Made by a program: the position numbers and the translations under genes. Below, piece after piece: positions 25,055-57,055 of a DNA stretch of 64,000 bases (positions are counted from its first letter, which is position 1; each line of letters opens with the position of its first letter). The stretch is taken from positions 62,001-126,000 of the forward strand of contig OW569381.1 in NCBI GenBank assembly GCA_937625935.1, in the 5' to 3' direction. This DNA is from Tetramitus jugosus. Lineage: Eukaryota > Protista > Heterolobosea. The notes below the pieces were generated by a model. It was not told the origin of the DNA, did no database searches, and saw only the letters and a list, made by a program, of their open reading frames with translations.

Positions 25055-25260
25055 TTTCGTTCTTCGAATACACATTGAATCCACTTGCTGACTTAGTAAC
25101 GATGCCGCTCTGCACCGGTATCCACCTTTCACTGGTTCAGGTCCATACGGACTCAGTTATGATGCAAATGGAGGGAAACGGATATACGATGATGCGACAA
25201 TTTGCCTTCCATCAGTCGCAAGTTGTCAAGCCATCAGTCGATATAACTCTTATCGTCGTC
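25055..25260 (-). mobile_element. Decayed, 5'-truncated 3' remnant of the tRNA-associated LINE, upstream of tRNA-Ser
   Basis: Minus strand 25248-25201 translates to SYID*WLDNLRLMEGK, matching SCIDIWFDNVRLKDGK in the 56233-56907 ORF. Ends in TCAGCAA...CAATGTGTATT plus a decayed A-rich tail, like the family 3' end. Boundaries approximate. Confidence 0.7.
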
Positions 25261-25304
25261 AAAAATTAGAATTATGCCTGTTTCAGCCCCTCCTAACACA
25301 ACAA

Positions 25305-25386
25305 GCTCATTTGGCCGAGTGGTTAAGGCGGCGCACTGCTAATGCGTTGGGTTCATCCCGCGTAGGTTCGAATCCTACAGTGGGCG
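25305..25386 (+). tRNA. tRNA-Ser(GCT)
   Basis: Acceptor GCTCATT/AGTGGGC, anticodon arm GCGCA-CTGCTAA-TGCGT, long variable arm, GGTTCGAATCC B-box, T6 terminator. Confidence 0.97.
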
Positions 25387-25694
25387 ACTTTTTTGTGACA
25401 AAAAGAAGCCAGCCACTTAAGGATTTCCGTGGTGGAGTGAGCGAACTAAAAACGATCAAATTCCAAACAATTAACATTTCATTTGTCCCGAAGGTGAGGA
25501 ATGTTCTGGATCGTATTATGAACTCTGACAGATCTACCACCATCATACTTAAGCGGTTCCAATGTGGAATCCTCTTTCTTCAATTGTCTAACTGGAAGCT
25601 TTCGTTCTCAACATTGGAAAAACCATGCAAAAAACCTTGGAATGCCGAACAACTCAATAAAAACAACCAACCACAAAACAACATTTCTCTCACC

Positions 25695-27674
25695 ATGTGG
25701 CCAACAACAACAACCATAACAACTCGAAGAACCCATAACATCAACAAATTAAAAATCACACCACCACACTATCCAACAACAACAACAACACCACTTCTCC
25801 CACTGTTACTGCTACTATTCATTTTTCATTTCATTCCGCTTGTTCAATCCTATTCACAATGTGTCGTCAATAAACCAATGAATCCCTATGCAGCTGCACT
25901 CTCAAAGTTTCGAACAAGTGTTCAATTGAGTCATGTGACTATTCCTCCTAGATCCATGCTCAATATCACTTGTCTGACAAAGAATGATTTTAGGCACAAG
26001 TATGAACTGTCTATCCAGTACGATCAACCATCGTCGCGAATCGAAGGAGCTTACATTTTGGATCAAAATTTGAATTTAATGTCGGGGAAATACTATCGGA
26101 TTGTGGGCGCTTCACCGAGCATATCTGGCTCGTTCAAGGTGAAACGGAATCGTTTCGTGGTGTTTGTTGTGTCGAATAGTGAGGATGTTCCTGTGAGTCT
26201 TGCGTTGAAGTTAAACTTTCGAACTGGGTTATCCAATTGGGCCTATGTCATGTGTTGGATCGGTGGCATTGTAGGCGCACTTGTGTTGGTAGTCAATCTA
26301 CCCAATATATTGCAAGTCGTCTTTGAACTTTGTAGACGTGTGTGGCTGCTTGTTTCTTATATTTTCAACGGTATCACGTATCTGTATCAATTTGGCAGAA
26401 ACTTGCTCTTGTCGTCCTACTCACAATTGAACGACATTGATTCAGAGTTGGGATTGCATAGTATGTTGGACGAACCACTGGAATATTCATTACAGGATTT
26501 ACCACCAGGTTGTGTCATACACATTTTGGACTATTTAACGCTGGCAGTTGAGAATCCATCCAAGTGGACTGCTCAATCGCAAAACAAACAAGTGCTGGAA
26601 CGGTACATGATGGGACAATTGTTTGGAAAATTTGTGAGGAACGATGTAGGATGTGACATCGATCGTCCATTGCTACTCTATTCAACCATTGATTTTACAT
26701 TGGTTCATCTCACATTATTATCCATTCCTCACACGCTTAGACTGAGGGAGGTAAAGAGCATGAGTATTCTCTACTGGTATAGTAAGTCTTGGTCGACGAA
26801 GTATTACAATCCGAACCTGAAAGAAGTTAGAATCACCAACTTCAGTTATCTATCGGCGGATCAAGTGCAAGAATTCATTGAAGCCGCCCAGCACTTAAAC
26901 GTGCTTGAGACATTTGTATCTACTTCAGGTGTGCTTCCATATTTACTCAACTTGAAGAAGATTTCCTGGAACTCCTTAAGCTTGGAAGACGCAACAGCAC
27001 TCGCCCACTTGCCAAACAAGCTTACCAAAATTACAATCAACAACATTGAGCCAATAGTATTTTCGATGATCACACAAATACCTTCTGTGGAATCATTTGA
27101 TTTATCAGTCAGAGACCTGCCAAAGTCAGCCTGGGATAACGTGGACTTCACCGTTGAAAAATCATTCCGATTCAGAGAAGTGTATAGCACACTCGCCCAC
27201 ACTGTTTATGTTCCACTGTATCGATACTATCTCAGAAATGTCGAATTGAGCGGAAACACGTTCTTGGCTCCTGAGTCATTTGATGACGAATCTGCACCAA
27301 ATTCTCAGTCCCATCTGAAGAGTTTGAGAGTCGAGAACGAAATGCCTGCTCAATTCTTCTACAATCTATCCCGATTTACTGATCTCAAGGAGTTGTTTAT
27401 CTCTGTAGCACCACCAATGTTTTGCTTCTTGAAACTGCTTCACGCTCTGCCCTCATTGGAAAAGCTGAAGATAGAACTGAGACCAGAAACAATTGAAAAG
27501 TATCCTAGTGTACCCTTAACGTTCAAACTTCAACGAAATGACATGTTAGAGCTACGGAACAAATGTCGTAAACTAACCTACGTCTGTTTCTTGGGTGCAG
27601 TTGAATTCTCCAACACAGGGAGCGGGTGGGAAGAAAATATTTTGGAACAGAGTCCTTTCATAAACAATGCTTGA
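25695..27674 (+). CDS. Signal peptide + TM + F-box-like/LRR-like protein
   Basis: True start must lie downstream of tRNA-Ser (ATG 25695 chosen). Hydrophobic leader, TM (AYVMCWIGGIVGALVLVV), F-box-like LQDLPPGCVIHILDYL, LxxLxx repeats. Confidence 0.6.
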   Translation: MWPTTTTITTRRTHNINKLKITPPHYPTTTTTPLLPLLLLLFIFHFIPLVQSYSQCVVNKPMNPYAAALSKFRTSVQLSHVTIPPRSMLNITCLTKNDFRHKYELSIQYDQPSSRIEGAYILDQNLNLMSGKYYRIVGASPSISGSFKVKRNRFVVFVVSNSEDVPVSLALKLNFRTGLSNWAYVMCWIGGIVGALVLVVNLPNILQVVFELCRRVWLLVSYIFNGITYLYQFGRNLLLSSYSQLNDIDSELGLHSMLDEPLEYSLQDLPPGCVIHILDYLTLAVENPSKWTAQSQNKQVLERYMMGQLFGKFVRNDVGCDIDRPLLLYSTIDFTLVHLTLLSIPHTLRLREVKSMSILYWYSKSWSTKYYNPNLKEVRITNFSYLSADQVQEFIEAAQHLNVLETFVSTSGVLPYLLNLKKISWNSLSLEDATALAHLPNKLTKITINNIEPIVFSMITQIPSVESFDLSVRDLPKSAWDNVDFTVEKSFRFREVYSTLAHTVYVPLYRYYLRNVELSGNTFLAPESFDDESAPNSQSHLKSLRVENEMPAQFFYNLSRFTDLKELFISVAPPMFCFLKLLHALPSLEKLKIELRPETIEKYPSVPLTFKLQRNDMLELRNKCRKLTYVCFLGAVEFSNTGSGWEENILEQSPFINNA

Positions 27675-27700
27675 CCCAGTTCCTGAAAAAAGTCAAAACG

Positions 27701-27773
27701 TACACCATATGGGAGTCGAACCCATGACCCCTGGATCCGAAGTCCAGTGCTCTATCCACTGAGCTAAAGGCGC
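27701..27773 (-). tRNA. tRNA-Arg(TCG)
   Basis: GCGCCTT...ATGGTGT-A; anticodon arm CTGGA-CTTCGGA-TCCAG; T arm ATGGG-TTCGACT-CCCAT; A20 present; weak acceptor stem. Confidence 0.92.
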
Positions 27774-27815
27774 TGTACATTAAAACTCCGACTAAAATTA
27801 CTAAAGTAATTTAAA

Positions 27816-27976
27816 GCGTGGTTTGACAAATTACGTTTCTGATTCAGTCGAGCAGAGAGTACCTCATGGGAATGATGGGATTAGAGAATGACGCTGTCGA
27901 CCAGGTGGCGGATGCGCTGATGAAAAATGGGATGAAACAAGAAGTAGCGCAGCGACGTGTTGTATTAAAAAAACAA
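27816..27976 (+). mobile_element. 5'-truncated LINE 3' remnant upstream of tRNA-Arg, with candidate 9-bp TSD
   Basis: Begins AWFDKLRF (compare IWFDNVRL); ends GCAGCG-ACG-TGTTGTATT-A7; flanked by TAATTTAAA at 27807-27815 and 27977-27985. Confidence 0.7.
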
Positions 27977-28080
27977 TAATTTAAAAACAATTTGCAGATC
28001 TTACATCTGGTTTGACAACCACCGGTTGTAGTAAAAAAGGTTGGTTCACATAATTTATCCATACTCATTGACCAACCAAC

Positions 28081-31000
28081 TTATTCCTTTGTTATTTTCT
28101 TTCTTCTTCTTGGCCTCATGACGGATGGTTGTTCAGATTGTTCAGATTGTTCTTCAGAATCATTCTCCCTTTTTCTTTTTGTGGACTTCTTGCCCTTTCT
28201 CTTGTCCAAAAACTTCTTGGTCTTTTCAAGCAACTCTCCAGTCATCAAATCCAATGGTGTTCGGCCATGCAAGTCAGTGAGTTCAGTGCTTGCACCAAAC
28301 TCTAACAAGTCTGGCAGAATAGCTTGCAAGGAATTCTCTGCGACATGATGCAGACAAGTTCGACCCACCTCATTTTGAGTGTTTATAAAGTTTGCAAATT
28401 CTGTCTCCTTTAGAGTGCCAATAGAAGGACGTTTTGCCTTGATGATTGTTGCTCGTCTAGGTTCCACACTACTATCAATCATGAAAAGTTGAGAAATAGA
28501 GAACATGATAGAAGGCAATTCACTACTCTCAACTTTTGAGCGCAAATTGTTGGTCAGTAAGTGTAAGAGAGTGTTTCCTGTTTTGGGATCCACAGCTTTT
28601 ACTTCACTCTCCAACAGTGGATCTCTTTCATAATGACGAACAAGCCAATTGAACATGAGACTCGCCGCTTCACACACCAACAGTTGCAATGTACTCAAAA
28701 ATGAATAAGAGTTGATTTCTCCTTTCATTTCAGATGGTGTCTGAGCCATCATTTCAAGCCATGATGGTTTTGTTTCTTTTCAGCTTCAATCATGAGGTTG
28801 ACAAACTTGCGCTCATCCTCCGCATTCATTCTGTGCCTCGACAAACAAAATCGTATGATTCGATGTAACTGATCCTTTGATGGAATAATCTTGTGCCGAA
28901 GAACAGCCACTGATGCGAAATGATAATTATCGTTCGCCAGAGCAATTTCAACCGGGCTATCGAATTGTTCGGCAAATGAACTAGTATATGGCCATAGAAC
29001 CGAAAACACGTCAAGAAGATTCGCTTCGCAAGCAAGAATGGCAGCATTTCTAGGTTTTCTTCCATCGACAACGTCATTCTCTAATGGCTGACTAATTATT
29101 TTGGATAATTCTGCCTTCTTCTTATACGTTTTCTTCAACTGATTGATGATGCACCGACATTGATCCCCACTCCGTTTTGCAGCAATGTGCAAAAGGTTAG
29201 GCTTAGTATCTTGTGATTCATCTCTGAGCAGTAAGTTGTGGGTATAAAGCATCAATGGTTCAAATATAGGATTATCAACTGCCACGTGTGTGACAACATA
29301 TAAAATGGGCAGAGGAACAAATTCAGTAGGATGTTTGCTTGTATACACTGGCTTGTTTGCAATAGCAGTCAACTTGATCGATAAATCATTCAATATCTGT
29401 AATCCTTTAGTAGCTTTGAGCAATATTTGGAGAGGACTCAAACCAGAAATATCTTTAAAATCGCCCTCTGTCAATGCTTCTGACTTTTCATGGAGCATCT
29501 CAGGATGATTCTCAAGGCATTGAAGGGCACAGTGTCTTGCAACAGGAAATGCCCCGAGTTTGCGCATATTCGTGTTGGCAATTATATTCATTTCATTTGT
29601 CAACTCTATTAAATCTCTGAATAGTATGTGCAAAGCGTTGAAACCATGCTTCATTCTCGGACTCAAGAGCTCTGACAGAGGCTTGGAAGAGCACGATGGA
29701 TTCAACATGATGAAGTTAATCAGTGGATAGTTGTAATTACAAAGAGCAGCTGTGACGACCGAGTACCCCTCATTGTTTTGAACATCGACTCGAGCACCAG
29801 AGTTGATTAACATCATACCAATCAGTTCAACAAATTGTGGTTGAGAGTAACAATCTCGGGCAAGTTTCTGTAAAAGGGATGGATTCTGTTGGATATAAAA
29901 GAGTGCATTTTCGCCCTTCTCATTCACTGAATTAGCATCAAAATCATTGTCCAGAAGCCATCGGATCGTCTCAGTTGAAAGAGTCGCCATTGAAGCATGA
30001 AGCAAATTTCCTTTTGATGTTTGATAGCTGGGCAACGATCGTTTCTGATTGAAGTAAGCACCCCTTGCTGTTTGAAGGAAATCAACAATAGCATTGCGGC
30101 TGCTAAAGGAACTTCTGACTACTTTGGACAAGAAAATCAGCTCAAGAGGCGTTTGATCGTTATTGTTCCTTGCAAATAGAAAATCTTCAGAACACTTTGC
30201 AAGAAGGTACTCCAAGGTGCTTAATTGGGTAGCAAGGCAAGCTGAGTGGATAACATTGTTACCACATTTATCCAAATGTGTGAGTGAGGCTCCTTCTTCC
30301 ACCAAATGTTTGACATCGCCACAATTATTGTCTCCCTGATCCTGTGATAATATTAACTGAATGATGGGAAGATCTCTCTGATTATCTCTTATAACTCCTT
30401 CTGAGTCTCCAAGAGATATTAACTCTGGCTTTAATGACAACAAGTACTTGATCAATTCTAAGCGCTGAAAAAAGCGAGATTTCTTCGTGGTTAGAGCCTC
30501 AACCAGAAAATTTCGAACCCCATTCACTGCTAGCTCAGGTGAATGCTCCTCGATGATTGATTTCAGAGCAGAGAACGAGTTGTTAGTTGTACACTTCGAA
30601 ATCAAGAGACTCAAGAGAGTACATGATCCATGATATCCAGGATAATCAAACGTATTATCAATATCGAGAACTAGCTCTGGATACTTCATTCTGCCTGGGT
30701 TTGTCAGCAATTTCAAGACATGGGAAACAACATTGACATGTTCCAACACAAATTTCGAAGCTGGCTTAACGTATGTAGATAACTGGTAAATGTGATTGCT
30801 CTGTGGCAAGCCAAGTAAATGATGGAAAGAGGAATACTCTCGAACAATTGCATCGATTTCTTCTTCGACAGTGCTTTCTGTGACTACTCTAGCTTGTTTA
30901 TCCATGTGCGACAAAACAATTCCTTCTTTTGTGGACATGAACTTGACGTAATCACCATACGAAACGACTTGAGGAAAATTCTCTAACGAAGTGTGACGAG

Positions 31001-31931
31001 CATCGCCTACTATTGACACCTCAAAGTTTGAGAATGACTCTTTGAGTTCTTGCCAATAGGCTTTGCTAGGTCCGTGGGTAAAAAATAAGTGCGACAAAGT
31101 TAAACTTTGTATGTCCACTTTGATTGAATCTATATGAATAGGGAACCACGCATAAGGCACCGTTATGTTCTCCCTTCCTTTTCTTGAGAAAACGGATAAA
31201 TGTTTTGAGGCGGGGCTCGACATCGGCATACCAATAATGTTAAGGTTCTTTGTCGAGCTTGGCAATGAAAGTGCAAGTATGTGAAAGTCTTCGAATACAT
31301 CCCAGCTCGTCCAACGACTACTACGATAGACTTGCTTCGTACCCAGAATATCCAACGTTTCTAGTTGAGTCAACTTTGGCAACAAACATTTCACACATGA
31401 AAGAAAATCCCCTTTGCTGAGGAAGGAACCAAATCCCAACTTTAGGTGCTTCACATTGGAAAACACATGGCCCAAGAAGTCAAATATTGGATCTCTACAA
31501 AAATACCCGAAAGACTCTTCAGTCATTCGCTGTCGCTTTCCCGTTCCACCAATTGGCTTATACTGAACAATTTGATTGTCATCCCTCATGTAATACTTTG
31601 GCTTTCCATCATCCACCAGATTCAAAAAAGTGACATTGCCATACACTTGTTCTTGAAATTCATAGAGCCATTGGGAACAAACAGATCTCAACACGAAATA
31701 ATAGGGAAAAGCCGGAACAAACGACATGATCAAATGAAAGATGTCTCTGGAAATGGGCTTATTATCCAGCATGAAAAAACCCAAAAGTTTATCTCGTTCT
31801 CTCTCTACATTCCGTTGCCAAGCTTGCTTGAAGGGAAACAACTCACAGTTATCATCATCATCATCTCTATTTTCAGTCTTTTGTGCGACAACAGAATCGT
31901 AGTTGTTGCACATGGACTCATCATCCTCCAT
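28081..31931 (-). CDS. F-box + LRR-like + ankyrin-repeat protein, probably one gene split by a 1-nt frameshift near 28777-28780
   Basis: F-box-like ISRDIFHLIMSFVP...LRSVCSQW; ankyrin repeats (GNNVIHSAC, GENALF, GRTCLHHVA, GRTPLDL). Adding one A to the GAAAAG run fuses the 28749-32075 and 28081-28752 ORFs. Confidence 0.7.
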
Positions 31932-32154
31932 TTTGTTTTGGAATTTCTGTTTTCGTGGCGATTTTTCCCCGCCCTCCTCTATTTTTTCTGAAGGAACGTC
32001 ATGATCCTTCAGACAACTTTCAGTTTTCTGCACATGAACCTGTATTCCACTCCCCAGGAAACTATTTAACCACACCGTCGGTGACGACGTCTGTCAAAGA
32101 AACAAAAGAACCAACAATAACACAACAAGTAAACCAACGAACCTTTGTGAAATT

Positions 32155-33270
32155 ATGAACAACACAAACAACAAGAAACGAACTCGATCAAATTCCCCGA
32201 CTACGACAGAAGAAGAGGAACGTTATCAAAAAAGATTAAAGCTCGTTCCCGTTTTGGCAGACACTAGTACTCACAAGAAGAAAAAGAATAAGAAGAATAA
32301 GAGGCGAAAGAATGTATATTTTTTGAGATCACTGTTTGTTCATCTTTCCATTGATGGTGATGATGGCGATGAGGAAAAGATTGATTTTCCCGAAATTTTC
32401 GCGGCGGACGGTGAAGTTTACGACAAGGCTGACGAATTTGACAATGTGTATTTTCTGGAACTGCTCAAGCGTGCTAGAGAAAATGCGGCAAAATCATCAC
32501 AATTGGTGAAGCCATCTATTTTTCATGCCAACCTGAAGCAAGGAGAGTTTTTCTCAATGGTACCTCCACAACCACAAGTATCAGATCAGGATAGAAATGA
32601 ATGGAGCGAGAGACCTTACGATTACATGAATTTGTTGGCCAACACTGAATACACCTTTTTTTTCCAGTTGAGAAAAATACCGCGCATGTGCTCCAGGCTC
32701 TTACAAAACACGGAAACGGGCGCTTTTCTGGTGTGTGATCGAATGGACATGGAACTAAAGCTACAAAATAAGAACAATTATCCCATAAGAGTCATGCTCG
32801 CAGTGTACAATCCTCATCCCATAATTCCAAGCGATGAAGATGAGAGTGATGAGGAGGAGGATGACAACGACAATGACAATACAACTGACTCTACTGAGAA
32901 ATTAAAAGGGGCCGAAGGAGAAGAATCTGGTGAAGAATATCTACTTGAAGGAGAAGTCAAAAGCATTTACCCAAAGGAATCATTGACAATTAGTAATGTT
33001 GAAACTGATTTTGTGAGATTACCACCAGGAAAAACAGAAATGATTACCATTTTGGCAAGTCAGTTTGGTCACTTAAAGGACGGAGAGCGATCACAGCTCA
33101 TGCTCATTGTGATTGATGATAGAGAGGGTGACACAATACGAAGTGTAGCTGAGAGAATTCAGGCACTGCACTTCCCGTTGGACATGTCTGCAAAGTACGC
33201 TCTGTGCGACACTGGTGCCTCCATCACCAATTTTATATTTGAAAAGTTTACAAAGAGGAGAAACAACTGA
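32155..33270 (+). CDS. Hypothetical nuclear protein
   Basis: 371-aa ORF with basic NLS-like tracts and an acidic loop. Confidence 0.65.
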   Translation: MNNTNNKKRTRSNSPTTTEEEERYQKRLKLVPVLADTSTHKKKKNKKNKRRKNVYFLRSLFVHLSIDGDDGDEEKIDFPEIFAADGEVYDKADEFDNVYFLELLKRARENAAKSSQLVKPSIFHANLKQGEFFSMVPPQPQVSDQDRNEWSERPYDYMNLLANTEYTFFFQLRKIPRMCSRLLQNTETGAFLVCDRMDMELKLQNKNNYPIRVMLAVYNPHPIIPSDEDESDEEEDDNDNDNTTDSTEKLKGAEGEESGEEYLLEGEVKSIYPKESLTISNVETDFVRLPPGKTEMITILASQFGHLKDGERSQLMLIVIDDREGDTIRSVAERIQALHFPLDMSAKYALCDTGASITNFIFEKFTKRRNN

Positions 33271-33402
33271 TTGCAATGTGCAACACTTCAAGTGAGGGTC
33301 ACTGTAGGCTGAGCATTTCGGTTGATCAACCTCCCTACTAAGTTTTTGTCCCAAGAAGTCATGAAAAATAAAATTTTTGTTTTGAAATTGGATTTTACAA
33401 AA

Positions 33403-37362: not shown

Positions 37363-37811
37363 TTTGTGATTTCTAATCAATTAATGAATCTGTGTAGGTT
37401 GTTTGTTGTTGATGTGATGGTTGTTGGTTCTCTAGGGTGAACAAAAAACTTCAAAAAAAATGCAGCAAATCAACTTGTGTGATGATGCTAGAAGTTTATG
37501 CGAACAATAGGTTGTTGAAAAGCTAGGTTGGAATACGTATCAATAACAGTAGTCCGTAATGATGGATTGATTGCTTGTTCAATGAAAATATATCAACACT
37601 ATAGTCATAGATGATGGTACTAACCAAGTGTGTGATTTGCGCACGCACACCACTTCAAATTGCTCCACATTTTATCTGTTTATTGTAAACTTGTTGAATC
37701 GAATCGCGAAAATAGTATTCTTACAAGATTGAACTTCATCGGGGAAAAATACTTGCTCGGAGATAATGCGCACCCAACAGAAGACCAAACAATACATTTC
37801 ACATAGCAGTC

Positions 37812-38342: not shown

Positions 38343-38535
38343 TTCCATCATGTGATGTGATTGGATTTGTTGGTGCACTGTATAAAATCATGAGTAAGGT
38401 CCATGAATTTGGTTCTTGGGTCCACAATCTTCGAAGTTCAACCGATGAGTGGAATAAAAAAATTTTAGCCAAAAACAACACAAAAAGAAGATTGTTATCA
38501 GCACATCCATTGCAGCTGCGAATCACAACACAACA

Positions 38536-40447: not shown

Positions 40448-40532
40448 TAAATTGCGTTTTGATATTTTACATGATAGTATATTTACAACTGATTTGGCTG
40501 GTCATTGGAATCAGTAGTGTACCTAAGGCGAC

Positions 40533-42845: not shown

Positions 42846-42896
42846 AATTTACAAGTTGGATTAGAAATACAGTGCCAAGCAAGGCATCCAGATCAT

Positions 42897-44395: not shown

Positions 44396-44589
44396 TGATT
44401 TGTTACTATTGTTATCTTCTGGGTGGTTTTTCAGATCTCGCGTTCTTTGTTATCCTGAAAAAAGTGGTTCTTGACGAGAGGTTGATTTCTCCTCTCTCGA
44501 TCTTCTGGATCAAGAACAAAGCTTCGTTCGAGAAGAGATCATTTCGCATCAAAATCATCAGAGAGAAATAAAAATATTGAGAGCGAGAG

Positions 44590-47253: not shown

Positions 47254-47370
47254 GTTGATCCGTAAAACAACACGTTTCCTTCAGATCAGACACCGTCTTC
47301 GAAACTGAAAAGAAACACCCAGATCACACCAAAAAAAAGAAATCATTTCAATTTTCATGCAGATCTGACC

Positions 47371-48417
47371 ATGAACTACAAACAGATGGATGAATTGCCA
47401 AACGATATACTCGTTTCCATACTATCGTATCTTCCCGCTCACACCATTATCAACTGTTGTGGTGGTGTCTCTGTTCGGTGGCACCAATTGATTCATTATG
47501 GCGCGATTGAACCTAATGGGCAACAAAAGGACAATGTTGGTGAAGGCTATCACTTTCATTCGGATTGGTTGTGGGAGGATATATTTATGGCACGATGGAT
47601 GAAAAATCAACTGTCGACAACTGCAACTACGACTGCTCCCTCAGCAACAACAACACCACTGGTTGAAAGTGAACAAGTGACCCGTGATCTTTGTTGGAAG
47701 GAGAAATTTGAGGTACAGTTGGCTCATTTGTACACTTGTAGAGTATGTCATGAACGTAGATCGCTCAATGATAGGATACGGGAGCATACTGTGGTTCACC
47801 CTTGCGAATGCCCTGGTTTCGTTGATCAAAGTTGTTTGGATCAAAGTGAGCGAAGTGGATTCGGTATCTTTCGTATGCCGTACAAGTACTGTAGTGCATG
47901 CAAGTCGTTTTATTGCTTGGAACGATCAAAGGATACTATTGTTCATCCTGCATTGTCCTCAATGGTTCAATTGAGTGTGGAACTAAGTTTATTGTTTGCG
48001 CTATATGTATTTGTTTGTTGGATGAGTTGGTGGTTGCTAGGAAAACCCTTGCTATTGGTGAATGCACCGAGTGAGAGCTCATACTTGGACAAGTTGACGA
48101 TGTACTCGCATGCCGCATCGATCATGGGGTTCTTCTTGTTTTGTGTCATTGTTATACTGTTGGATGTTGCAATAGTCTTATCTGGGAATGTAACAACCAA
48201 TTCATTTTCCGATCTGTTATTCAATTGGCAAGACAGTGATCAGGACTTGTTTACGGTCGCTCCTGGTGACCACTACTCCTTTGTTGGTTACACAATGATG
48301 GTAGTGGCTGTTTGTACCGTATTGAGCATTATCACCTATCGAAACACTGTAACGTACAACAGACGAATGACGCGCTACTATCAAGCCAAGGATTCTCAAC
48401 ACAGTCTCATAAATTGA
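47371..48417 (+). CDS. F-box + RINGv(MARCH)-like + multi-TM protein
   Basis: ELPNDILVSILSYLP F-box; CRVC...HPCECPG..DQSC...CSAC RINGv-like motif; about 3 TM helices. Confidence 0.75.
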   Translation: MNYKQMDELPNDILVSILSYLPAHTIINCCGGVSVRWHQLIHYGAIEPNGQQKDNVGEGYHFHSDWLWEDIFMARWMKNQLSTTATTTAPSATTTPLVESEQVTRDLCWKEKFEVQLAHLYTCRVCHERRSLNDRIREHTVVHPCECPGFVDQSCLDQSERSGFGIFRMPYKYCSACKSFYCLERSKDTIVHPALSSMVQLSVELSLLFALYVFVCWMSWWLLGKPLLLVNAPSESSYLDKLTMYSHAASIMGFFLFCVIVILLDVAIVLSGNVTTNSFSDLLFNWQDSDQDLFTVAPGDHYSFVGYTMMVVAVCTVLSIITYRNTVTYNRRMTRYYQAKDSQHSLIN

Positions 48418-48513
48418 GTTTGTTCATAACAACTTTTGTAAATGTTCGTCTTTAACATTTACAAAATGAATTAGCCACATAAAGAAGACTCCCCTTTGAA
48501 CCAAAACTCAGTA

Positions 48514-48586
48514 CTCCTCCAGTTGGGCTCGAACCAACGACCTGCAGGTTAACAGCCTGACGCTCTACCAACTGAGCCATGGAGGA
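48514..48586 (-). tRNA. tRNA-Asn(GTT)
   Basis: TCCTCCA/TGGAGGA-G acceptor; anticodon loop CTGTTAA; GGTTCGAGCCC B-box. Confidence 0.96.
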
Positions 48587-48632
48587 CACATTTCTGTGAC
48601 ATCAGCAAAAAAAGATAGGGTTCTACTTGCCT

Positions 48633-49951
48633 AAAAAACGCAGAAAAAAACGGAATCACATGTCTGGTGATTCAACAAATTTGGTGAAGGAATACGGCAA
48701 CAGCCGTTACGCAGTGTGGACCACTGCACGGAAAGGCTCTAGGCCAAGTGACAGAGAGGTGGTCATTACTGGCAACGGTAATGGTGTCTCTCAGTCATCT
48801 TTGGCAAGAAAGATAGGAGCGGAGTTTGGTGACTGGCTCAACCGAGTCCAGGTCATCAAGAGGAAAGGCCAGCAACGCTTTGTTGCATGGGTGACGGTCA
48901 AAGGCGACCGCATCTATGACTTTGTTGAGTTGTTCAACAAAGAGAGGAGGATTGGCAACAGCACTGCTGCACCCAAGCGCAGTGTTGATTGTACAAGAAA
49001 GGTGGTCGTCCATGGCATGAAGAACATGTCAGTGGACGACATCAAGAAGCTACTGGGACCTGAGAAGGTTGCCAGTGTGCTCAAGAAGCGTGACACTGCT
49101 TTCGTGGTCATGGGTGATGAAACCTATGCACGAGCAGTGCTCAGCGGAGAGAACAAGGTAAAGGCCACGGTCACTCGATACGTCGAGAGACCACATGATC
49201 CTCTCAAGGCTGTCAACAGGAGGTTGACGAAGATGTACGAGGAGCTGCTGACGGTGGTTGACGCACTGCGTCTACAGGTCACAGAACTCACCAAGGAATT
49301 GACAAAGACAAAGGGTCAAGAGAGCAACAAACCGGTTCCGATACCGGAACCAGAAGTTGCACAAAGTACTGCTCCTGATCTAATGGAGGCAGAAGAACAA
49401 AGGAGTGCAACACCACTGCCAACAGTGCCTGTTGTACAGCTCAGCGCTGAAAATCGGCAAATCCTGGAGCAAGTGAATACCACTTCTCCAGTGTTTGCAA
49501 GAGTGAAGAAGGAAATTGCTGCATTGGCACTGGCTGCTGCACGCAAAAGGTATGGTTTGACTGAGGACGAACCAGTCATTGTGGATGTGGATGATGACTC
49601 CGAAAAGGAGATTCAGAGCCCACAACTCAATGACAACAAGAAGAGGAGTGCCAGGATCACACTGGGTGATCTGATGAGCAACAAGGCCCAAAACAAGAAA
49701 ACAACAACAGATGGCTCTGTGTCCATCGACGGTCCTACTACAAGGTTACGCTCTTTGATGAAGGGCATCAACCAAAACACTCACCAGAGTGATTCTTCCA
49801 ACCTGTAGGTGCACCGTCGGGGACAACAAGAGAAGAAGAGTGAATGACGCCCTACGGGTCGTCACTCACAAAACAAGTCAATAAATGAGCAATCGTGTGC
49901 TTGCGCAAGCACACATGGTTGTATGGAACAAAAAAAAAATAAAAAAAAAAA
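48633..49951 (+). mobile_element. Element E1: ORF1-only non-autonomous retroelement with poly(A) and 16-bp flanking duplication
   Basis: AGGGTTCTACTTGCCT at 48617-48632 and 49952-49967; single ORF; 3' UTR with hairpin, AATAAA, 20-bp palindrome (49895-49914), TGGTTGTAT and an A-tail. Confidence 0.85.
48660..49808 (+). CDS. Retroelement ORF1 protein (RRM-like domains + coiled coil), intact, 382 aa
   Basis: KVVVHGM...TAFVVM RNP2/RNP1-like motifs; heptads RLTKMYEELLTVVDALRLQVTELTKEL; four paralogous remnants nearby. Confidence 0.75.
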   Translation: MSGDSTNLVKEYGNSRYAVWTTARKGSRPSDREVVITGNGNGVSQSSLARKIGAEFGDWLNRVQVIKRKGQQRFVAWVTVKGDRIYDFVELFNKERRIGNSTAAPKRSVDCTRKVVVHGMKNMSVDDIKKLLGPEKVASVLKKRDTAFVVMGDETYARAVLSGENKVKATVTRYVERPHDPLKAVNRRLTKMYEELLTVVDALRLQVTELTKELTKTKGQESNKPVPIPEPEVAQSTAPDLMEAEEQRSATPLPTVPVVQLSAENRQILEQVNTTSPVFARVKKEIAALALAAARKRYGLTEDEPVIVDVDDDSEKEIQSPQLNDNKKRSARITLGDLMSNKAQNKKTTTDGSVSIDGPTTRLRSLMKGINQNTHQSDSSNL

Positions 49952-51324
49952 AGGGTTCTACTTGCCTTAAAAAAACGCCGATGAAAAAACGAACACACAC
50001 CCCTGTTGTTCGTGAGTATGAGAATCCACGCTATGCTGTGTGGACCACAGCACCAAGAGGAACTGCACCAAGCAAGGAGGTCATCATCACTGGAAAGTGT
50101 GATGACTCTCCCAAGGCTGCCTTGGCCAAGAAGATTGGCTTGGATTTTGGTGATTTGCTCACCAGGGTTCAAGTCATCAAGAAGGGCCCTTCCCCAAGAG
50201 GTTTGTTGCGTGGGTAACTGTTGTTGATGACAACATTTACCCATTTGTTGAATCCTTCAACCACAACAAGAAGATGAGTGGCTGCAAGGCAGCACTCAAG
50301 CACAACGTAGATTGTGCCAAGAAGGTCGTCCTCCACGGTGTCAAAGGTAAGACGGAGGACGACATCAAGGCCATGCTTGGCACAACAAAGGTCAAGAACG
50401 TGCTCAAGAAGCACGACACTGCCTTTGTTGTGATGGAGTCCGAAACGTATGCCGAAGCTTTGCTTCGGAACGTTCAATCCATGCCAGTGGAGGTGGAAGC
50501 AAAGCGCTTCCTTCCACGCCCACGTGATCCCGTCAAGGCTGTCAGCAAGAGGCTGACCAAGATGTACCAAGAGCTACTGGCTGTGGTGGACGACCTGCGC
50601 CATCAAGTCAGTGTGTTAAGAGATATGGCTTCCGTCAACCGGATTCCCCTCGCATCCCCGTCCCCAAGGACGGAGCGAATCCCCGAATTCGAACCTTCGA
50701 CTCCGTCTACGACCGATGACTGGGAGTCGATCATGCCGGAGTCCCATCCCGCCACTCCAACTACGGTCAACCAAGAGCCAACCAACAACACCATTGATGA
50801 GGATGCTCGTAACAGAGCAATCCTCGAGCTAGTATTGAACACCTCCGAGGTGTTCAAGAAAGTCAAGAAAGAGATTGCTGCCCGAGCAATCATGGTGGAT
50901 CGTGCAAGAAGCACAACCACCGAAGAAGATCCAGTTGAGTTGGATCTCAGTAACCCCGACTGTGAGTTACAGAGTCCCCAACTCAACGAACACAAGAAGC
51001 GATCAGCACGTGTCACCGTTGGTGACACTGCTGTCAACAAGATCCCGGCCAGGTTGGCCAGTATCAAGTCAGGTGCTCTCCGTAGGTCCTACCAACTGGC
51101 TAGGACTACGGATCCATCTGACCTCACCAGTGGTGCTCCAGATGGTAGTGGAGGCCCTCGCAACGAATCCCTAAAGAAGGGATCAAAACAACATTCCAAG
51201 AAGAGAATGAATCCTGTTGCGTAGGCCTGCCACTCCACTGGGCAAGCACCACATCATGTTAGACAATTGAGAGCAGGCAAGCCTGCTCTCACACAAAAGA
51301 CAAATAAAAGTTCAGCAACGTGGT

Positions 51325-52936
51325 CTTTAGAAAAAAATATGAACGGCGATTGAAGTCTCTCTGACCGGCACCGGTCAAGCGGAGGGTTCAAAATGTCGCT
51401 CAAGGGTTGTCGAGTCAAGAAAGAGTGACCGGAGAATGAACACAGGGGTCAATCATCAATGAACCCACATGACCACGAGCGGTCAGACAAGGGTCACTCG
51501 AGCGTCTGACCTGGCTGTGGTCAAGTTGCGATCCAAGCACGTTTGATCAACCGCTCAGACCTCTTTGGCCTGTATCGGACTTGTCAATAAAGGGAACTTG
51601 GATCCATCTACTTCAGTAGAATTGTCATTCATTCTTGTTTTCAAGTTTTTGCCTCGTTTTGCCGTAGCTCTGTGCTTCACGACCTCTCAATTTTGAGATA
51701 CAAAAATTGAAAACCAAAACCATACAAAATCACAACAACTAACAAACAAATTAACATTATGTATACAGACCACCAACTGCAAACTCCACAAACAAGTGGT
51801 CAAGCTGATACAACACCACAACAAGCCATCTACTCTCAAGGTTTCTCCCAAGTACAGAACGGATCTCCCTACAACCATATTGCAAGTGTCCACGGCAATC
51901 CTATGGTTTTTACTCAAGCTCTGTCTCCTGGGTATCAAGCCATCCATCAACAACAGCAGCAGACTCCTCCAAGAGGCTTCCAAAAGTTGATGGAGATAGA
52001 GATGCATGGATTGACGATGCCTGGATGTCAAACAAGTCCAAATTCTTGGAACTGCTGCCAGAGTGGTCCAATGGCTCCTCTGCACTGAAAGAGGATAGAT
52101 TATCAGTGGTAATGTAGAACATTTTATTGTATTTTGTTTCAACAACAAACAATGCTAACTTTTGAGTAGTGGAAGCATATTCTAAAGCACTACTATTTGT
52201 GTAGATACATGAGGGATGTGAGCATGTACACCAATCCCGAACAAACAAGCAATTTGGTTCAAGTAGATGCTGAACAGTTTGAACTGTTCAAGAAGAAGAT
52301 GCTATTCTAGTCCTTAACAGAGGAAAATTTCAAGCAATGGAGGAATTCAGGTGAGAATGACCAAGCTGTAGGATTGGTATGTAGTGTTTATTGAAGTTGT
52401 TAACAATGGTACTAACTTTTGTATACCTAGTGATACGACAAGTGGGTGGAATTCTTTATGGATTCTTCAATGACTCTCAAGCAGTTGAAGATGAACGCTC
52501 CTGCAATCAGGAAGAACAAGGATTTGTGTCATGATAGCTCTGGAAGTGAAGAGAGCCAACAAACAGTGGTTTGATTGGTGTATTGATTTTGTCATTGAAT
52601 AAATTTTTACAATTCTCCTGCAATTACTTTACAATCATTTTTATAGTCAATACAACCATTACAACAAACACCGGAGCGGACCAATCGGATCCTTTGAGAC
52701 ATAGGAGCAGACCAATTATACTCTGCGGTCATCACGATTTGACACAATGTGGACCGTCGCCCAAGAATTGTTCATCGCCGGTTCAAGCTCATCCGGTCAC
52801 TCCCAGTTCCTGGTTCGGTCAGACATTCCCCCCAAGCTGACCGGTCAGTGACCGAACACCTGACCGATGCTCATTGAACGGCGAGTGAACGAAAAATGAG
52901 CGGAGGTCAAGAAATCGGTCCAATTTTTTTCTAAAG
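51325..52936. mobile_element. Non-autonomous DNA transposon, CACTA/EnSpm-like
   Basis: Perfect 14-bp TIR CTTTAGAAAAAAAT (51325-51338 / 52923-52936); 2-bp TSD GT; dense TGACCG/CGGTCA subterminal repeats at both ends; removing it restores the E2 3' hairpin. Confidence 0.85.
51759..52570 (+). pseudogene. Decayed intron-containing gene inside the TIR element
   Basis: Q-rich ORF from ATG 51759, then a frameshift; candidate introns 52109-~52169 (GTAATG...TGCTAAC...AG) and 52377-52430 (GTATGT...TACTAAC...TAG); in-frame stops. Confidence 0.5.
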
Positions 52937-52970
52937 GTGCGCGAGCACCATTTGTTGTATTAAAAAAAAA

Positions 52971-53607
52971 CAAAAACAACGCGAAAACAGATGCAAACAA
53001 ACGAAATCACGTAATTTTCCATCCTCTCAAGGAGTGCGCGAGTATGTCAAGAACAGGCATGCTGTATGGACTACACTTCCCACAGGAGGTACAGTCAACA
53101 AACATGAAGTCATTCAGGGCAACAACCAACAGGGCTCGGTCATGGAGGTTGCGAGACATGTCGCAAACAGGTGTTCACCTTGGGCAACTAGAGTCCAGGT
53201 GATCAAATGGGAGAAAGATGAGTATATTGCATGGTTCAACCTCAAGAAAGACGAGATCTATGAGTTTGTGGAGCATTTCAACACCACAGTGTGTGAAAAA
53301 TGCCAAGGCATCCATCAAGAGAGGATTAGAAAATGACAAGAAGCTTGTTATGCACGGTGTTGAAGGAAAAACTACGGAGGAGATTGCAAGACTTGTTGGA
53401 ACTGAGAGTACAGCAAGTGGTGAAGAACAACAATACGGCCTTTGTGACAATGAGGTCGCCGACATACGTGCAAGCACTGATTGGAGATTCTAGTCTCAGT
53501 GTGAAGGTGAGCAAGTACAAAGGAGGGATGAACGAATCATGGTGGTTAACCGAAGATTGGAAACCACTAGAAAACAACTAACTCTAATGGTCGAGATTGT
53601 ACCTTGA
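52971..53607 (+). mobile_element. Element E3: decayed ORF1 copy, 3'-truncated
   Basis: VREYVKNRHAVWTT...RVQVIKWEKDEYIAWFNLKKDEIYEFVEHFN, KLVMHGVEGKT, NTAFVTM and VVNRRL spread over several frames. Confidence 0.8.
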
Positions 53608-53809
53608 ATGACACCAAAGCAAGATTGCTCCTCAATCGTTGCATTCAAGGTACACGTATAAAATATCTTTATGAAGTGTACACTATTTACAAACAGTTGA
53701 ATCCTCTGAAGTCAGTGGGACGAAAAAGATATAGATTATCCATCCATCCAATATTGATCTGAAAGATACAGTATAGAGGTCCCAGGTCAATTCGATGAGA
53801 AAAAATCTT

Positions 53810-53880
53810 CTCGAGCACCGGGAATCGAACCCGGGTCGCCAGAGTGACAGTCTGGAATGCTACCCCTATACCATGCCCGA
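53810..53880 (-). tRNA. tRNA-Asp(GTC)
   Basis: TCGGGCA/TGCTCGA-G acceptor; CCAGA-CTGTCAC-TCTGG anticodon arm; GGTTCGATTCC B-box; T6 terminator. Confidence 0.96.
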
Positions 53881-53924
53881 TGTGTTCCTTAGTTTCATCT
53901 TTCAAAATGCACCTCTGGAGAAGT

Positions 53925-55350
53925 TTCAAAAAAACATGGGCACAAATGCAAACACTCCATCCTCTCTGGGGGCAAAGGAGTACTCGCGTGACGGGTATGG
54001 ACAGTACAGAACATTGGAAGTAGCATCAACAAAAAAGAAGTCGTGATCAAGGGTACACAGTTCTGTGATGATTGGCTCAAGGTACAAGGAGTGGGTGACT
54101 CGTGCACATGTCAGAAGATGGGAGAAAGGCCAGTTTATTGCGCGGGTAAACGTGAAGGACGATAAACTCTACGAGTTTGCTGAGATGTTCAATGAGTCAA
54201 GAAGAATCGCAAACGCTCATGCATCAAGAGAGGTCTTGACTCAGAGAAAAAACTTGTGGTTCACAAGGTCCTCGGCAGTTCAAAGGACGACATCGTTAAA
54301 CTCATTGGAGAGGATAGAGTGCATCATGTAGAAGTTAAGGGCAGCACTGCATTTGTCACGATGACATCTCAATCATATACACATACTGTCATTGAAAACA
54401 AGCAGATTCAAAGAGAAGAAGGTGAAATATCTGGTGAGTCAGTCTTAATTGCTGCCAAGTGTTGATTGAAGATGACATTTTAATGCTAGGAGATGAAACA
54501 ATCTCTGAACAAAAGGCTCAGACGCTGGAGAACAAACTACAAGTGGTTCGGCTGACAGATATGATTGATATTGTTCAGGCCAGTAAGGAAGTGGCGCGTG
54601 TAGTGACAAGCCATGTGATACACAGCAATGAGGTGTCTCAACCCCAGTCGGACCACACATCTCAATTATGTTGAAGGGTGATGTAACTGCTGTGTAAAAT
54701 CATCACATCCGCTATCATCAAACACGCTAAAGTGTTTGAAGTGGAAAGAACAGCGAAGATGTGGAGCAACAATCGTAATGTCAAGAGGTTGTTGATAAAC
54801 ACAGTGGGTAATTTGGCTGCCGAGTACTTTGAAGGTGCCTTCTCCACTATGTTGATAATCTAAGAGCTTTAAAAAGTGATGGGTACAGAGCAACAATACA
54901 CAAAGCGTTCACCCCAATCACTACCGAGGAAGTTAGCAAAGCCATTGGGTGGCTGAGAAACCGAAAATGTCCCGGTGTTGACAAAATACATAACGAAATG
55001 CTGAAAGTCCCCATCACAGAGATCCTTGCTGATTTCTTTAACAAAATCACCAGGCAAGGATGTTCCCCAAAATGTGGAAAGAGGGGATAATTATCACAGC
55101 GTTCAAGAAGGGAGATACTTCTAATCCTGCCAACTACAGACCAATTTGTCTGTTGAGTACTGTATCAAAGCTGTACACCAAGTTAATCAACGGCAGAATC
55201 TCCAAGGCTGCAGAGGGAACAAAAGACGATTGTTTCTGTTGCTGACAGATATATCAAAAGCCTTCGACTCGGTACCTCACAACGCTATCCGGTCTATCTA
55301 TGAGTTTTTCGAGCTCCCGGACAACATCGTGAGGCTGACTTCTGGACTAT
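53925..55350 (+). mobile_element. Element E4: heavily deleted autonomous-type LINE relic (ORF1 - APE - RT)
   Basis: ORF1 remnant 53936-~54430; APE-like DILMLGD and QSDH (~54470-54660); RT PITTEEVSKAI...KCPGVDKIHNEMLK, WKEGII...KKGD...NYRPICLL, DISKAFDSVPH (~54914-55350). Confidence 0.88.
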
Positions 55351-55354
55351 ATTG

Positions 55355-56152
55355 GAGTAGAGCAATAATACCACTGTGCTTTCTCCTTATGCCCGAATGT
55401 TGTACCACATTACTGCGATACTCATTCAAAGTCACTGTCGCTCACGTGTTCAATAATCACTGCTGGTACAGTCTTGTGAACATGAACTGTGCCCTTTGGT
55501 GTAGCGGATTCATGAACTTTGTTGGGTTCCTCTTCTCTCTCATTTTCTTCGGTATCCCTCTTCTTACCTCGCCTTTCAGGAGTCTTCAAATTGGGGAACA
55601 TCTTAGTGATTGCTGTCTCACGATTCTTGAATCCCCTCAATCTATAAGAAGCTCGGACCTCGGTTTCTCCAATGTCTTCACTTTGTTGAACTGATGGTTC
55701 ACTCTGGCGCACTGGTAGTTCATTTCGAGTAGCTGAGCTCTTTGTCAACCCTCTGAACAGTCCATGCAACTTAGAGACTTCTCTCTTAAGTGCATGGATG
55801 TCCTTCATACACATTCTGTACTTGTTAGTCATGTCGTTGAGTTGCTGCTGAAGTGATGCCGTAGAGTGTTTCATCTGTAGCGCTCTATCAGGCTCTGGGT
55901 GAACAAATGGTCTCACTCTTGTGTTCTCCAAGGGCTGCTTCTCCGTCATCACCTTTGTTGAATTCATGGATGAATTCCCACTCCTTGCCCTCCTACCCAG
56001 GCTATATCTCCAATTCTGTAGACTTGCGTCTTTGAATCAACTACCTTCAAGAGTGCCATTGGTCTTTGCGGCTGCTTCTTTAGACTGATAAGCGATCACG
56101 CTGAATAGTGGTTGCGACGTATCACCATCGCCTGTACGGCCCTTGAGTGTTT
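55355..56152 (-). mobile_element. Element E5: divergent ORF1 remnant followed by the start of ORF2 (APE)
   Basis: TQVYRIGDIAWV / EFIHEFNK, coiled coil LNDMTNKYRMCMKDIHALKREVSKL, VIIEHVSDSD; ORF1 stop overlaps an ATG at 55425 giving MSIAVMWYNIR. Confidence 0.6.
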
Positions 56153-56170
56153 GACATCGTTTTTAGTTTT

Positions 56171-56927
56171 TTTTATTTTTTTTTTTTAATACAACCATTG
56201 CGGTTGCTCACTTTATTATCAATACATTTTCATCAGCCATCGCTCATTGAGCGATGGCTCTTGGTCTTCTGATTAATTCCCAATGACGCTCGCAGACGCT
56301 TTTCCATCTTGCCGTCCTTCAGTCTCACATTATCGAACCATATGTCGATACAGCTGTTGGCTGACACGCCCATTCTGATCAGCTCCTTACTGACTGTCAA
56401 GGCTAGACATCTTCTTGCATACACAGTCCTTGGACATCGAATGAGACAGTGCAACACACTTTCGGGCTCTTTGTTGCACCAGACACACTTTGTGGGCTCA
56501 TCACAAGTGTTGTACAGACATCGAACAACATCCTCCGTATGTAGAGTCCCACTTCTGACCTGAAGCTGGAACCATTCCAGCCTTCTGTCAACAGAGTGTG
56601 GGTACTTGAGAAAGCAGAAGTCTGCTCCACTGTAGTTGGCATCCTTTTGAATCCACCAACGCTCACTCTTCTCTACTCGTGCATTCCTCTCCTGATCGAA
56701 TAAGGATTGAAGATGTTCCCTACTCTCGACTCGGAGGTTACCCTTGTACAGAGCCGGTTCATCTTTAGTGGAGTTTTGGTTTATGGGACACTGACATGTC
56801 CTCATCTGCGCAATCAAAATGTTCAGTATTTGGTGCGATTTTGCACCTATCTTACATGTTGGGAATAGTTGCTTGAATTCTTTGAAACACAGAGGCTGTT
56901 CCTCCACAAGCAGTTGATTGCGGCTTA
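56171..56927 (-). mobile_element. Element E6: 5'-truncated LINE (ORF2 C-terminal zinc finger + 3' UTR + poly(A)) with 18-bp TSD
   Basis: CVWC...ESVLHCLIRC zf-RVT-like motif; AATAAA-GTGAGCAACC-GCAAT-GGTTGTATT-An; GACATCGTTTTTAGTTTT at 56153-56170 and 56928-56945. Confidence 0.9.
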
Positions 56928-56982
56928 GACATCGTTTTTAGTTTTGCTTTTTTTATTGAAGCGAACTCGGTTGACACATCCT

Positions 56983-57055
56983 CCTCTGATAGCTCAGATG
57001 GTAGAGCATGAGACTGTAGATCTTGTGGTCGCGTGTTCGAGTCACGCTCGGAGGA
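56983..57055 (+). tRNA. tRNA-Tyr(GTA), intronless
   Basis: CCTCTGA/TCGGAGG-A acceptor with C1-G72 and A73; anticodon loop CTGTAGA; GTTCGAGTC B-box; T4 runs downstream. Confidence 0.95.

Follow-up and report, generated by a model that had tools for sequence, protein, structure and literature searches.

Position-specific integration of long interspersed nuclear elements (LINEs) upstream of genes transcribed by RNA polymerase III (Pol III) has so far been documented only in dictyostelid amoebae. The TRE5 elements of these hosts are non-LTR (long terminal repeat) retrotransposons with two open reading frames (ORFs), which insert head-to-head about 50 nt upstream of tRNA genes, and of which ORF2-less derivatives are common (PMC5006619); TRE5-A is also reported to target Pol III sites on a ribosomal DNA element (PMC5391098). 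A TRE5-like site, 39-64 nt upstream of tRNA genes, is occupied by Pp_NLTR-B of Polysphondylium pallidum, a LINE that is not a TRE (PMC5006619). The latter demonstrates that LINEs unrelated to TREs can acquire such a site independently, although it is itself a dictyostelid element, present in only three copies and without a full-length consensus, and is likened to the present system by description only. In yeast, the Pol III machinery is a landing beacon for LTR elements, with Ty3 using TFIIIB, and Ty1 using the Pol III subunit AC40. Other non-LTR elements, including R1, R2, Tx1, NeSL and TRAS, find a fixed genomic address by reading the DNA sequence.

The stretch analysed here comprises 64,000 nt of the genome of the heterolobosean Tetramitus jugosus (contig OW569381.1, C38:62001-126000; henceforth the window, numbered from its first base), part of a 26.35-Mb assembly of 56 contigs. 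ARAGORN and Rfam make the same calls for its five tRNA genes, and a LINE copy or fragment lies 43-57 nt upstream of every one of them, with the 5′ end of the element toward the 5′ end of the tRNA. This arrangement had been claimed in an earlier reading of the sequence (the original prediction), and was found at all five genes by tblastn and the reading of junctions. The structure, position, orientation, target-site duplications and stacking of the copies, and the selection acting on their ORF1, can be read from the genome itself, and these elements very probably constitute a LINE superfamily that integrates by target-primed reverse transcription (TPRT) at one fixed site, and in one orientation, upstream of Pol III genes encoding both tRNA and 5S RNA. 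Their behaviour is TRE5-like, and the targeting probably arose independently of that in dictyostelids, through convergence. LINE targeting of Pol III genes would then be known from two distant supergroups, probably with separate origins.

The ORF1 of Element A, the intact copy at the tRNA-Asn gene of the window, has at least 113 matches in the genome, about 35 of which are full-length at 92-98% identity, with a second family at about 51%. The C-terminus of ORF2 has at least 152 matches, at least nine of them with open frames of 1200 aa or more, and as these matches span 27-99% identity, there must be many subfamilies. In 20 of the 30 best-scoring ORF1 loci, the ORF1 ATG is about 70 nt from an opposite-strand tRNA gene, and these genes represent 13 amino-acid kinds; in three, the head-to-head target is a 5S rRNA gene, and in one it is a tRNA-like sequence matched at 33 bits. 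The other six start right behind the poly(A) tail of another element, forming stacks, and the tRNA gene at the head, seen for four of them, has the same orientation. Hence the position-specific targeting of Pol III genes that had been proposed is upheld, with 24 of these 30 loci abutting a tRNA, 5S or tRNA-like gene and the remainder stacked; no opposite-orientation copy, no copy downstream of its target, and no sign of scattered or randomly oriented insertion was found among the 30. Since 24 of the 30 best copies share one fixed distance and orientation relative to a Pol III gene, chance can be excluded as the cause.

Orientation was fixed in every adjacent case: the 24 ORF1 loci, the five window genes, all four long loci, and five loci consisting of ORF2 tails (these five, of 11 further such loci, have an opposite-strand tRNA gene at the truncated 5′ end of the element). 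The reverse check gave the same picture, as, by coordinates, an ORF1 or ORF2 match in the expected orientation immediately precedes about 21 of 53 listed nuclear tRNA genes, while wrongly oriented upstream matches were found at none of the 53. The figure of about 21 is a lower bound, because the protein search misses short tails, such as those at the window genes for tRNA-Ser and tRNA-Arg, and only a subset of candidates was scored. Two features of the system go beyond the original prediction: 5S genes are also targets, and the dominant copies are ORF1-only elements. The tRNA-like target (L013 2726-2782, on C50 at about 203.1 kb) scores 33 bits with Rfam, was missed by ARAGORN, and is hit by Element A with exactly the geometry found at tRNA genes; a transcription complex may still form on it if it is an atypical or decayed Pol III gene.

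Within the window, the most informative locus is the tRNA-Asn(GUU) gene (48514-48586, minus strand; ARAGORN, Rfam), which heads a stack of three elements, all on the plus strand. Nearest the gene is Element A, an intact 1.32-kb ORF1-only half-LINE (48633-49951, or 48617-49967 with its duplications), delimited by its junctions and by its genomic copies. Its first base is at -47 from the tRNA, and a 16-nt duplication, AGGGTTCTACTTGCCT, stands at 48617-48632 and 49952-49967. It consists of a 27-nt 5′ untranslated region (UTR), ORF1 at 48660-49808 (382 aa), a 3′ UTR of about 120 nt that contains hairpins and ends in ...GGTTGTATGGAAC, and a poly(A) tail. Element B (49968-52970; tblastn, blastn) follows as a member of the second ORF1-only family, with an ORF1 about 50% identical to that of A but frameshifted in this copy (49981-50184 and 50196-51224), and a terminus of ...TTGTTGTATTA plus A9 whose last base is 52970; intact copies with a 414-aa ORF1 exist in L005, L016 and L018. 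Directly after the poly(A) of B comes Element C (52971-53600, the end approximate; tblastn, blastn), the decayed 5′ part of an ORF1 from a third family, in which the ORF1 remnant at 53004-53518 is 48% identical to residues 3-177 of the ORF1 of L049 by tblastn and the 3′ end has been lost. This remnant does not belong to the neighbouring tRNA-Asp gene, downstream of which it lies, but is the third member of the tRNA-Asn stack. The 3′ UTR of B is split by a foreign insert of 1.6 kb (51325-52935), which is fairly GC-rich for this genome and mostly unique, has only short matches of 81-96% on six other contigs, has no Pfam match, and contains a Q-rich 109-aa ORF. This insert could be host DNA that was transduced or captured, or else the remains of an unrelated element.

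The remaining four genes carry degraded or 5′-truncated copies. At tRNA-Asp(GUC) (53810-53880, minus strand; ARAGORN, Rfam), Element D (53928-55350, plus strand; tblastn, blastn and a weak RVT_1 match) has its 5′ end near 53928, at -48, and its ORF1 ATG at 53936, at the predicted 56 nt upstream. It retains a broken ORF1 to about 54660 and pieces of ORF2 (residues about 279-646), with internal deletions and the 3′ half missing. At tRNA-Tyr(GUA) (56982-57058, plus strand; ARAGORN, Rfam), the 757-nt Element E (56927-56171, minus strand; 56153-56945 with duplications; blastn, junctions) consists of a 5′-truncated ORF2 C-terminus, 3′ UTR and poly(A), flanked by an 18-nt duplication, AAAACTAAAAACGATGTC, at 56945-56928 and 56170-56153, and is 98.6% identical to the genomic element L047, in which ORF2 is open over 1116 aa. 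At tRNA-Arg(UCG) (27700-27773, minus strand; ARAGORN, Rfam), a 5′-truncated tail of 161 nt (27816-27976, plus strand; 27807-27985 with duplications) was delimited by tblastn, blastn and junction reading, with its first base at -43 and the duplication TAATTTAAA at 27807-27815 and 27977-27985; it holds the C-terminal end of ORF2 (residues about 1208-1245 by tblastn), the terminus ...TTGTATTA and a short A-tail, and is 91% identical to L007 by blastn. At tRNA-Ser(GCU) (25305-25386, plus strand; ARAGORN, and Rfam at 59.5 bits) there is an old, decayed, 5′-truncated tail at 25070-25255, limits approximate (minus strand; blastn). Its secure homology (25194-25248, minus strand) starts 57 nt upstream and matches positions 5957-6011 of L049, in the 3′ part of ORF2, on the opposite strand (85% over 55 nt, E 2.6e-12, blastn).

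Measured against these junctions, the predicted distances of 43 nt for Arg and 47 nt for Asn stand, as does the range of 45-57 nt given for the start of homology at Ser, whereas the first base of Element E is about 55 nt from tRNA-Tyr rather than 56 nt. The three flanking duplications are unrelated in sequence, as had been stated, with two of them exact and the third two bases away from its claimed junction. The original description of a single LINE family needs qualification, as the window copies represent several subfamilies. A DNA repeat search found no repeat of 60 nt or more in the whole window, because its copies belong to different subfamilies that have diverged too far, and therefore searches were made at the protein and genome levels. 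When six element proteins, some encoded in the window and others by full-length copies elsewhere in the genome, were used as tblastn queries, no further copy was found in the whole 64 kb, which agrees with the earlier observation that none lies away from a tRNA gene. The approximately 0.8 kb between the tails of D and E (55338-56157) does not match any of the element loci compared, and contains a 181-aa ORF (55422-55967, minus strand) with weak Pfam hints of the coiled-coil type; this may be the spacer that originally separated the divergent genes for tRNA-Asp and tRNA-Tyr.

Autonomous members of the superfamily are about 5.3 kb long, with ORF1, ORF2, a conserved hairpin-rich 3′ UTR and poly(A). 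The full-length L049, on C20, has tRNA-Val (minus strand) as its target and a 9-nt duplication; its A-rich 5′ UTR starts about 48 nt upstream of the gene, followed by an ORF1 of 463 aa, an overlapping ORF2 of 1274 aa, the 3′ UTR, a long poly(A) and the second copy of the duplication. The best Pfam matches of the 1274-aa ORF2s of L049 and L050 are Exo_endo_phos (E 1.3e-08) and RVT_1 (E 5e-26), while a zf-RVT match in a sister ORF2 is weak (E 0.0034; 18.4 bits, under the Pfam cut-off of 27.5 bits). By its predicted domains, ORF2p is thus an apurinic/apyrimidinic endonuclease (APE) and reverse transcriptase (RT) with a Cys/His C-terminal domain. Four sampled ORF2s are 57-73% identical to one another. 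Copies truncated at the 5′ end include those at tRNA-Arg and tRNA-Tyr, as well as L047 and L048.

The commonest copies are ORF1-only units of 1.3-1.45 kb, which outnumber the autonomous elements. Those of family A have the 27-nt 5′ UTR, an ORF1 of 382-388 aa, a 3′ UTR of about 125 nt and poly(A), with host genes directly after; those of family B have the same build and an ORF1 of 414 aa. The two are about 50% identical, and each has sharply defined ends. ORF1 is open in 29 of the 30 A loci, the exception being L002, with a premature stop. The 29 intact copies share 95.9% DNA identity and have a ratio of nonsynonymous to synonymous substitution rates (dN/dS) of 0.26, a sign of purifying selection, and therefore the ORF1 protein is needed for propagation. 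The A and B 3′ UTRs have the same stem-loop layout, and the same ...GGTTGTAT terminus, as those of the ORF2-bearing elements. A 3′ tail common with an autonomous partner is the usual mark of non-autonomous elements recognised by the partner's reverse transcriptase, and because of these common tails we infer that the ORF1-only elements borrow the ORF2p of autonomous relatives in trans. Families A and B therefore resemble HAL1 (half-L1) and TRE5-A.2 in keeping an intact, selected ORF1 along with the LINE 3′ tail, poly(A) and duplications, but differ from them in that two separate ORF1-only families, about 50% identical, coexist at the same Pol III-gene site.

The first 215 or so residues of ORF1p are conserved over all ORF1 families. 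The AlphaFold model of ORF1p, confident for residues 8-175 only (pLDDT 70-89), has two beta-alpha-beta-beta-alpha-beta domains followed by a 40-residue helix, and the best Foldseek matches are proteins with tandem RNA recognition motifs (RRMs), such as DND1, HuD and SFPQ/NONO, albeit with low TM-scores of 0.17-0.24 when normalised by model length. ORF1p is hence predicted to combine a tandem RRM with a coiled coil. No Pfam family was matched by any ORF1, and a search of PDB sequences with an ORF1 profile returned a single short, biased match (a 'CAP REPEAT' entry), and nothing usable. For ORF2, a word-index search gave only ten distant matches, and an exhaustive search of 1.84 billion representatives gave metagenome fragments at 38-93% identity, the best of them on a 3-kb contig, and generic LINEs at 22-33%. 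The nearest named relatives are arthropod and charophyte LINEs at 26-30% identity, and no dictyostelid is among the six names recovered from the ten long matches that were looked up; these names do not point to any particular LINE clade. When the reverse transcriptase was compared with the PDB using phmmer, R2 enzymes matched (E 1e-14), and human L1 ORF2p did not.

These relationships bear on whether targeting upstream of Pol III genes was invented once, such that the present family would be a true member of the TRE5/TRE lineage, acquired by ancient inheritance or by horizontal transfer between amoebae. The likeness to the TRE5-A, -B and -C elements of Dictyostelium is extensive: two ORFs, an ORF2 of APE-RT-Cys/His type, poly(A), short duplications, insertion about 40-50 nt upstream with the 5′ end of the element toward the gene, targeting of 5S genes, common ORF2-deleted derivatives, stacked insertions and a compact host genome. 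Shared ancestry would account for this layout, down to duplications of about 13-16 nt and the head-to-head site about 45-50 nt upstream (TRE features: PMC5006619), and as both hosts are soil amoebae, an exchange of DNA is conceivable. It is nevertheless an unlikely explanation. Firstly, the named ORF2 relatives, at 26-30% identity, come from arthropods and charophytes, with none of the six from a dictyostelid. Secondly, TRE ORF1 proteins are reported to be mutually dissimilar (PMC5006619), whereas a tandem-RRM N-terminus is common to all subfamilies here. Thirdly, the 5′ UTR is only 27 nt and lacks the A/B/C-module structure of TRE5-A. Fourthly, a survey encountered no TRE-like elements even among Amoebozoa other than dictyostelids (PMC5006619), while the present host belongs to the Heterolobosea, in Discoba. 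The position is also tighter, at 40-46 nt, than the 37-95 nt reported for TRE5 in D. discoideum. An independent origin of the targeting thus remains the more probable account. In the searchable literature, no paper ties TRE5-type targeting to any heterolobosean; the Naegleria genome papers merely count LINE fragments, and the Acrasis genome paper is silent on transposons.

The precision of integration is apparent from the empty sites, which were rebuilt from both copies of the duplication for 23 element copies. Target-site duplications are 12-19 nt long (median 16) in at least 24 of the 30 copies. Relative to the mature 5′ end of a tRNA target, the duplication has its near edge at 26-30 nt and its far edge at 40-46 nt, and in 20 copies the 5′ junction lies at 40-46 nt (median 44); at 5S targets, the near edge is 21-24 nt and the far edge 38-40 nt from the 5S +1. 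The offset of 5 nt between the two kinds of target is about the length of a pre-tRNA leader, and therefore, relative to the start site, the nicks at both kinds fall together at roughly -22 and -39. In the proposed mechanism, TPRT would start at the poly(A)-side nick, 26-30 nt before the mature 5′ end of a tRNA (21-24 nt before the 5S +1), and the second nick would be about 16 nt further out, leaving the 5′ end of the element 40-46 nt upstream and facing the gene. Repeated hits at the same spot would then produce a stack with the newest copy next to the gene. In the L050 stack, the newer full-length element sits at the inner edge of the duplication of an older A copy, exactly the nested structure that repeated hits at a fixed distance would build.

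The ruler for this distance is most likely the upstream TFIIIB/Pol III complex, as for TRE5-A in Dictyostelium, because the duplicated targets share nothing, and because the internal promoters of tRNA and 5S genes differ, whereas the TFIIIB/Pol III complex upstream of the start site is common to both. In tRNA genes, the A box lies at about +8, while the internal control region of the type 1 promoter in 5S genes spans about +50 to +90. By the same analogy with TRE5-A, one of the element's own proteins, perhaps ORF1p, would contact TFIIIB or another host factor at this complex. Such reliance on the Pol III machinery as a beacon for safe insertion in a compact genome resembles that of Ty3 and Ty1, although those LTR elements employ an integrase rather than TPRT, have no such fixed orientation, and insert at the start site (Ty3) or over a wide window (Ty1) instead of at a fixed distance.

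Alternatively, distance might be measured from the internal promoter complex, meaning TFIIIC on the A and B boxes, or from the transcribed gene body. Every target here has internal promoter elements, and a TRE5-A target needs an intact B box (PMC5006619). This alternative is improbable given the geometry just described, as a reference at the A box would give very different distances for 5S and tRNA genes, whereas the near edges of 21-24 nt and 26-30 nt differ by only about the length of the tRNA leader. These near-equal distances point therefore to the start site or TFIIIB as the reference, with TFIIIC perhaps still serving to load TFIIIB.

It is very unlikely that the endonuclease reads a specific DNA sequence that happens to lie upstream of Pol III genes, in the manner of R1, R2, Tx1 and NeSL. 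T and A are weakly enriched just inside the near nick, and in the flanks of L001-L030 most mature tRNA 5′ ends are preceded, at a distance of 4-8 nt, by a conserved ATATT-like motif (AAATAT on the tRNA strand). Yet the 23 rebuilt empty sites have no shared motif or conserved base at either nick, their duplications are unrelated, and the three 5S targets are hit despite lacking the ATATT-like motif, so the interpretation as a sequence-specific LINE was rejected for want of a conserved target sequence. Thus these elements resemble R1, R2, Tx1, NeSL and TRAS in having a fixed genomic address, but differ in that their target sequences bear no relation to one another, and only the position with respect to the gene stays constant. 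The motif itself may serve the tRNA genes of this host as a start-site or leader element. The weakest alternative, that integration is random or weakly biased and selection retains the harmless copies upstream of tRNA genes, suits a compact genome of packed, intron-poor genes in which most random insertions would be harmful, but was rejected as barely credible because selection cannot yield a 5-nt spread of nicks, a strictly single orientation and ordered stacks at the same base pairs, and no copy is found in the other intergenic space of the window.

Outside the assembly, sequences 90-99% alike to A and B occur in contigs of two soil metatranscriptomes and one oligo-dT RNA library. These contigs include a loose end in which the A terminus is followed by poly(A). 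In the oligo-dT library, the depth of the element bins exceeds that of the neighbouring F-box gene by a factor of hundreds to thousands, which hints at transcription of the elements. Scanning metagenomes with the ORF1 alignment recovered three short contigs. In one, with a 95% identical ORF1, the element lies 44 nt from an apparent tRNA 5′ half that is cut by the end of the contig; another, at 45% ORF1 identity, contains a stack junction from poly(A) to 5′ end, with the same terminal motif.

Several considerations weigh against this account of a Pol III-tethered superfamily. The census covers best-scoring subsets (30, 12 and 4 loci, and 53 tRNA genes) rather than every copy, and the head gene was not traced for two of the stacked copies, L005 and L020. 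Elements C and D are 3′-truncated, which TPRT does not yield, such that later deletions must be assumed. The basis for mobilisation in trans is the shared 3′ tails alone, and the RNA contigs are assemblies of mixed samples that cannot prove transcription, strand or organism. Finally, the geometry would fit TFIIIC, Pol III itself, DNA shape or a chromatin feature of Pol III promoters, and not TFIIIB alone.

A more specific, and correspondingly tentative, synthesis, which we regard as somewhat short of an even bet, combines an independent origin in Discoba with a duplication covered by TFIIIB and an ORF1p that acts as a docking module. The nicks at about -22 and -39 would bracket the seat of TBP/TFIIIB, so that the 16-nt duplication would represent the DNA that TFIIIB covers, and the tandem-RRM/coiled-coil ORF1p would both package RNA and dock on TFIIIB. 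Such docking by ORF1p might in turn explain why two ORF1-only families, living off the ORF2p of their relatives, are the most successful elements of the genome. If true, this would provide a second, experimentally separate system in which to study how TPRT is aimed with base-pair precision without reading the DNA sequence.

The targeting of Pol III genes in a supergroup distant from the dictyostelids, probably of independent origin, adds weight to the idea that in compact genomes retrotransposons are driven time and again to use the Pol III pre-initiation complex as a safe harbour. The 5-nt spread of insertion sites and the many young, intact copies offer material for understanding how a protein landmark aims a TPRT machine, and families A and B are a natural example of ORF1-only elements that keep their address. 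In practical terms, targeting that is exact in position but independent of sequence is also relevant to gene insertion tools built on retrotransposons.

The affiliation of the host is relevant to these comparisons, as a dictyostelid would have been a familiar setting for TRE5-like elements. The window encodes a homologue of dynein axonemal assembly factor 5 (DNAAF5), so the host builds flagella, and a dictyostelid is therefore excluded. Among named hits of normal length, those closest to the cytosolic HSP90 are from Willaertia magna (77%), Naegleria fowleri (75%) and Acrasis kona (74%). Higher bit scores, at 67-76% identity, are reached by a few longer plant entries that look like fusions, ordinary plant HSP90s are only about 20 bits behind, and environmental sequences match at 81-100% identity. 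An LMBR1-like protein matched a single metatranscriptome sequence, and a protein atlas placed the host no more closely than Eukaryota. In-register matches to (TTTGGG)5 number about 6,000 forward and 6,000 reverse across the genome, with long arrays, for instance from C1:698978 onwards. A TTTGGG repeat has been proposed as the telomere of N. gruberi (PMC3622300), and the arrays are consistent with telomeres of this type. All three lines, namely DNAAF5, the heterolobosean HSP90 hits and the (TTTGGG)n arrays, speak against a dictyostelid. The genes of the host are long, largely uninterrupted and closely packed, and at 26.35 Mb and about 41% GC the assembly differs from the sequenced Naegleria species, which have 30-41 Mb and 35-37% GC (PMC6125883). 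By themselves, these features place the host, with moderate confidence, among heteroloboseans other than the genera sequenced so far.

Two further observations concern the surroundings of these genes. Directly downstream of tRNA-Ser in the window is a 787-aa ORF without a Pfam family (25311-27674, plus strand), whose middle resembles a transmembrane region and whose C-terminal half is rich in leucine; when it is read from a TTG further upstream, it overlaps the 3′ part of the tRNA gene, and its real start is probably further in. Elsewhere in the assembly, contigs C54 and C56 have identical tRNA matches at 941, 12773, 14364, 14438 and 44585, and are probably a single organelle genome, mitochondrial and at least 45 kb in length, that was assembled twice.

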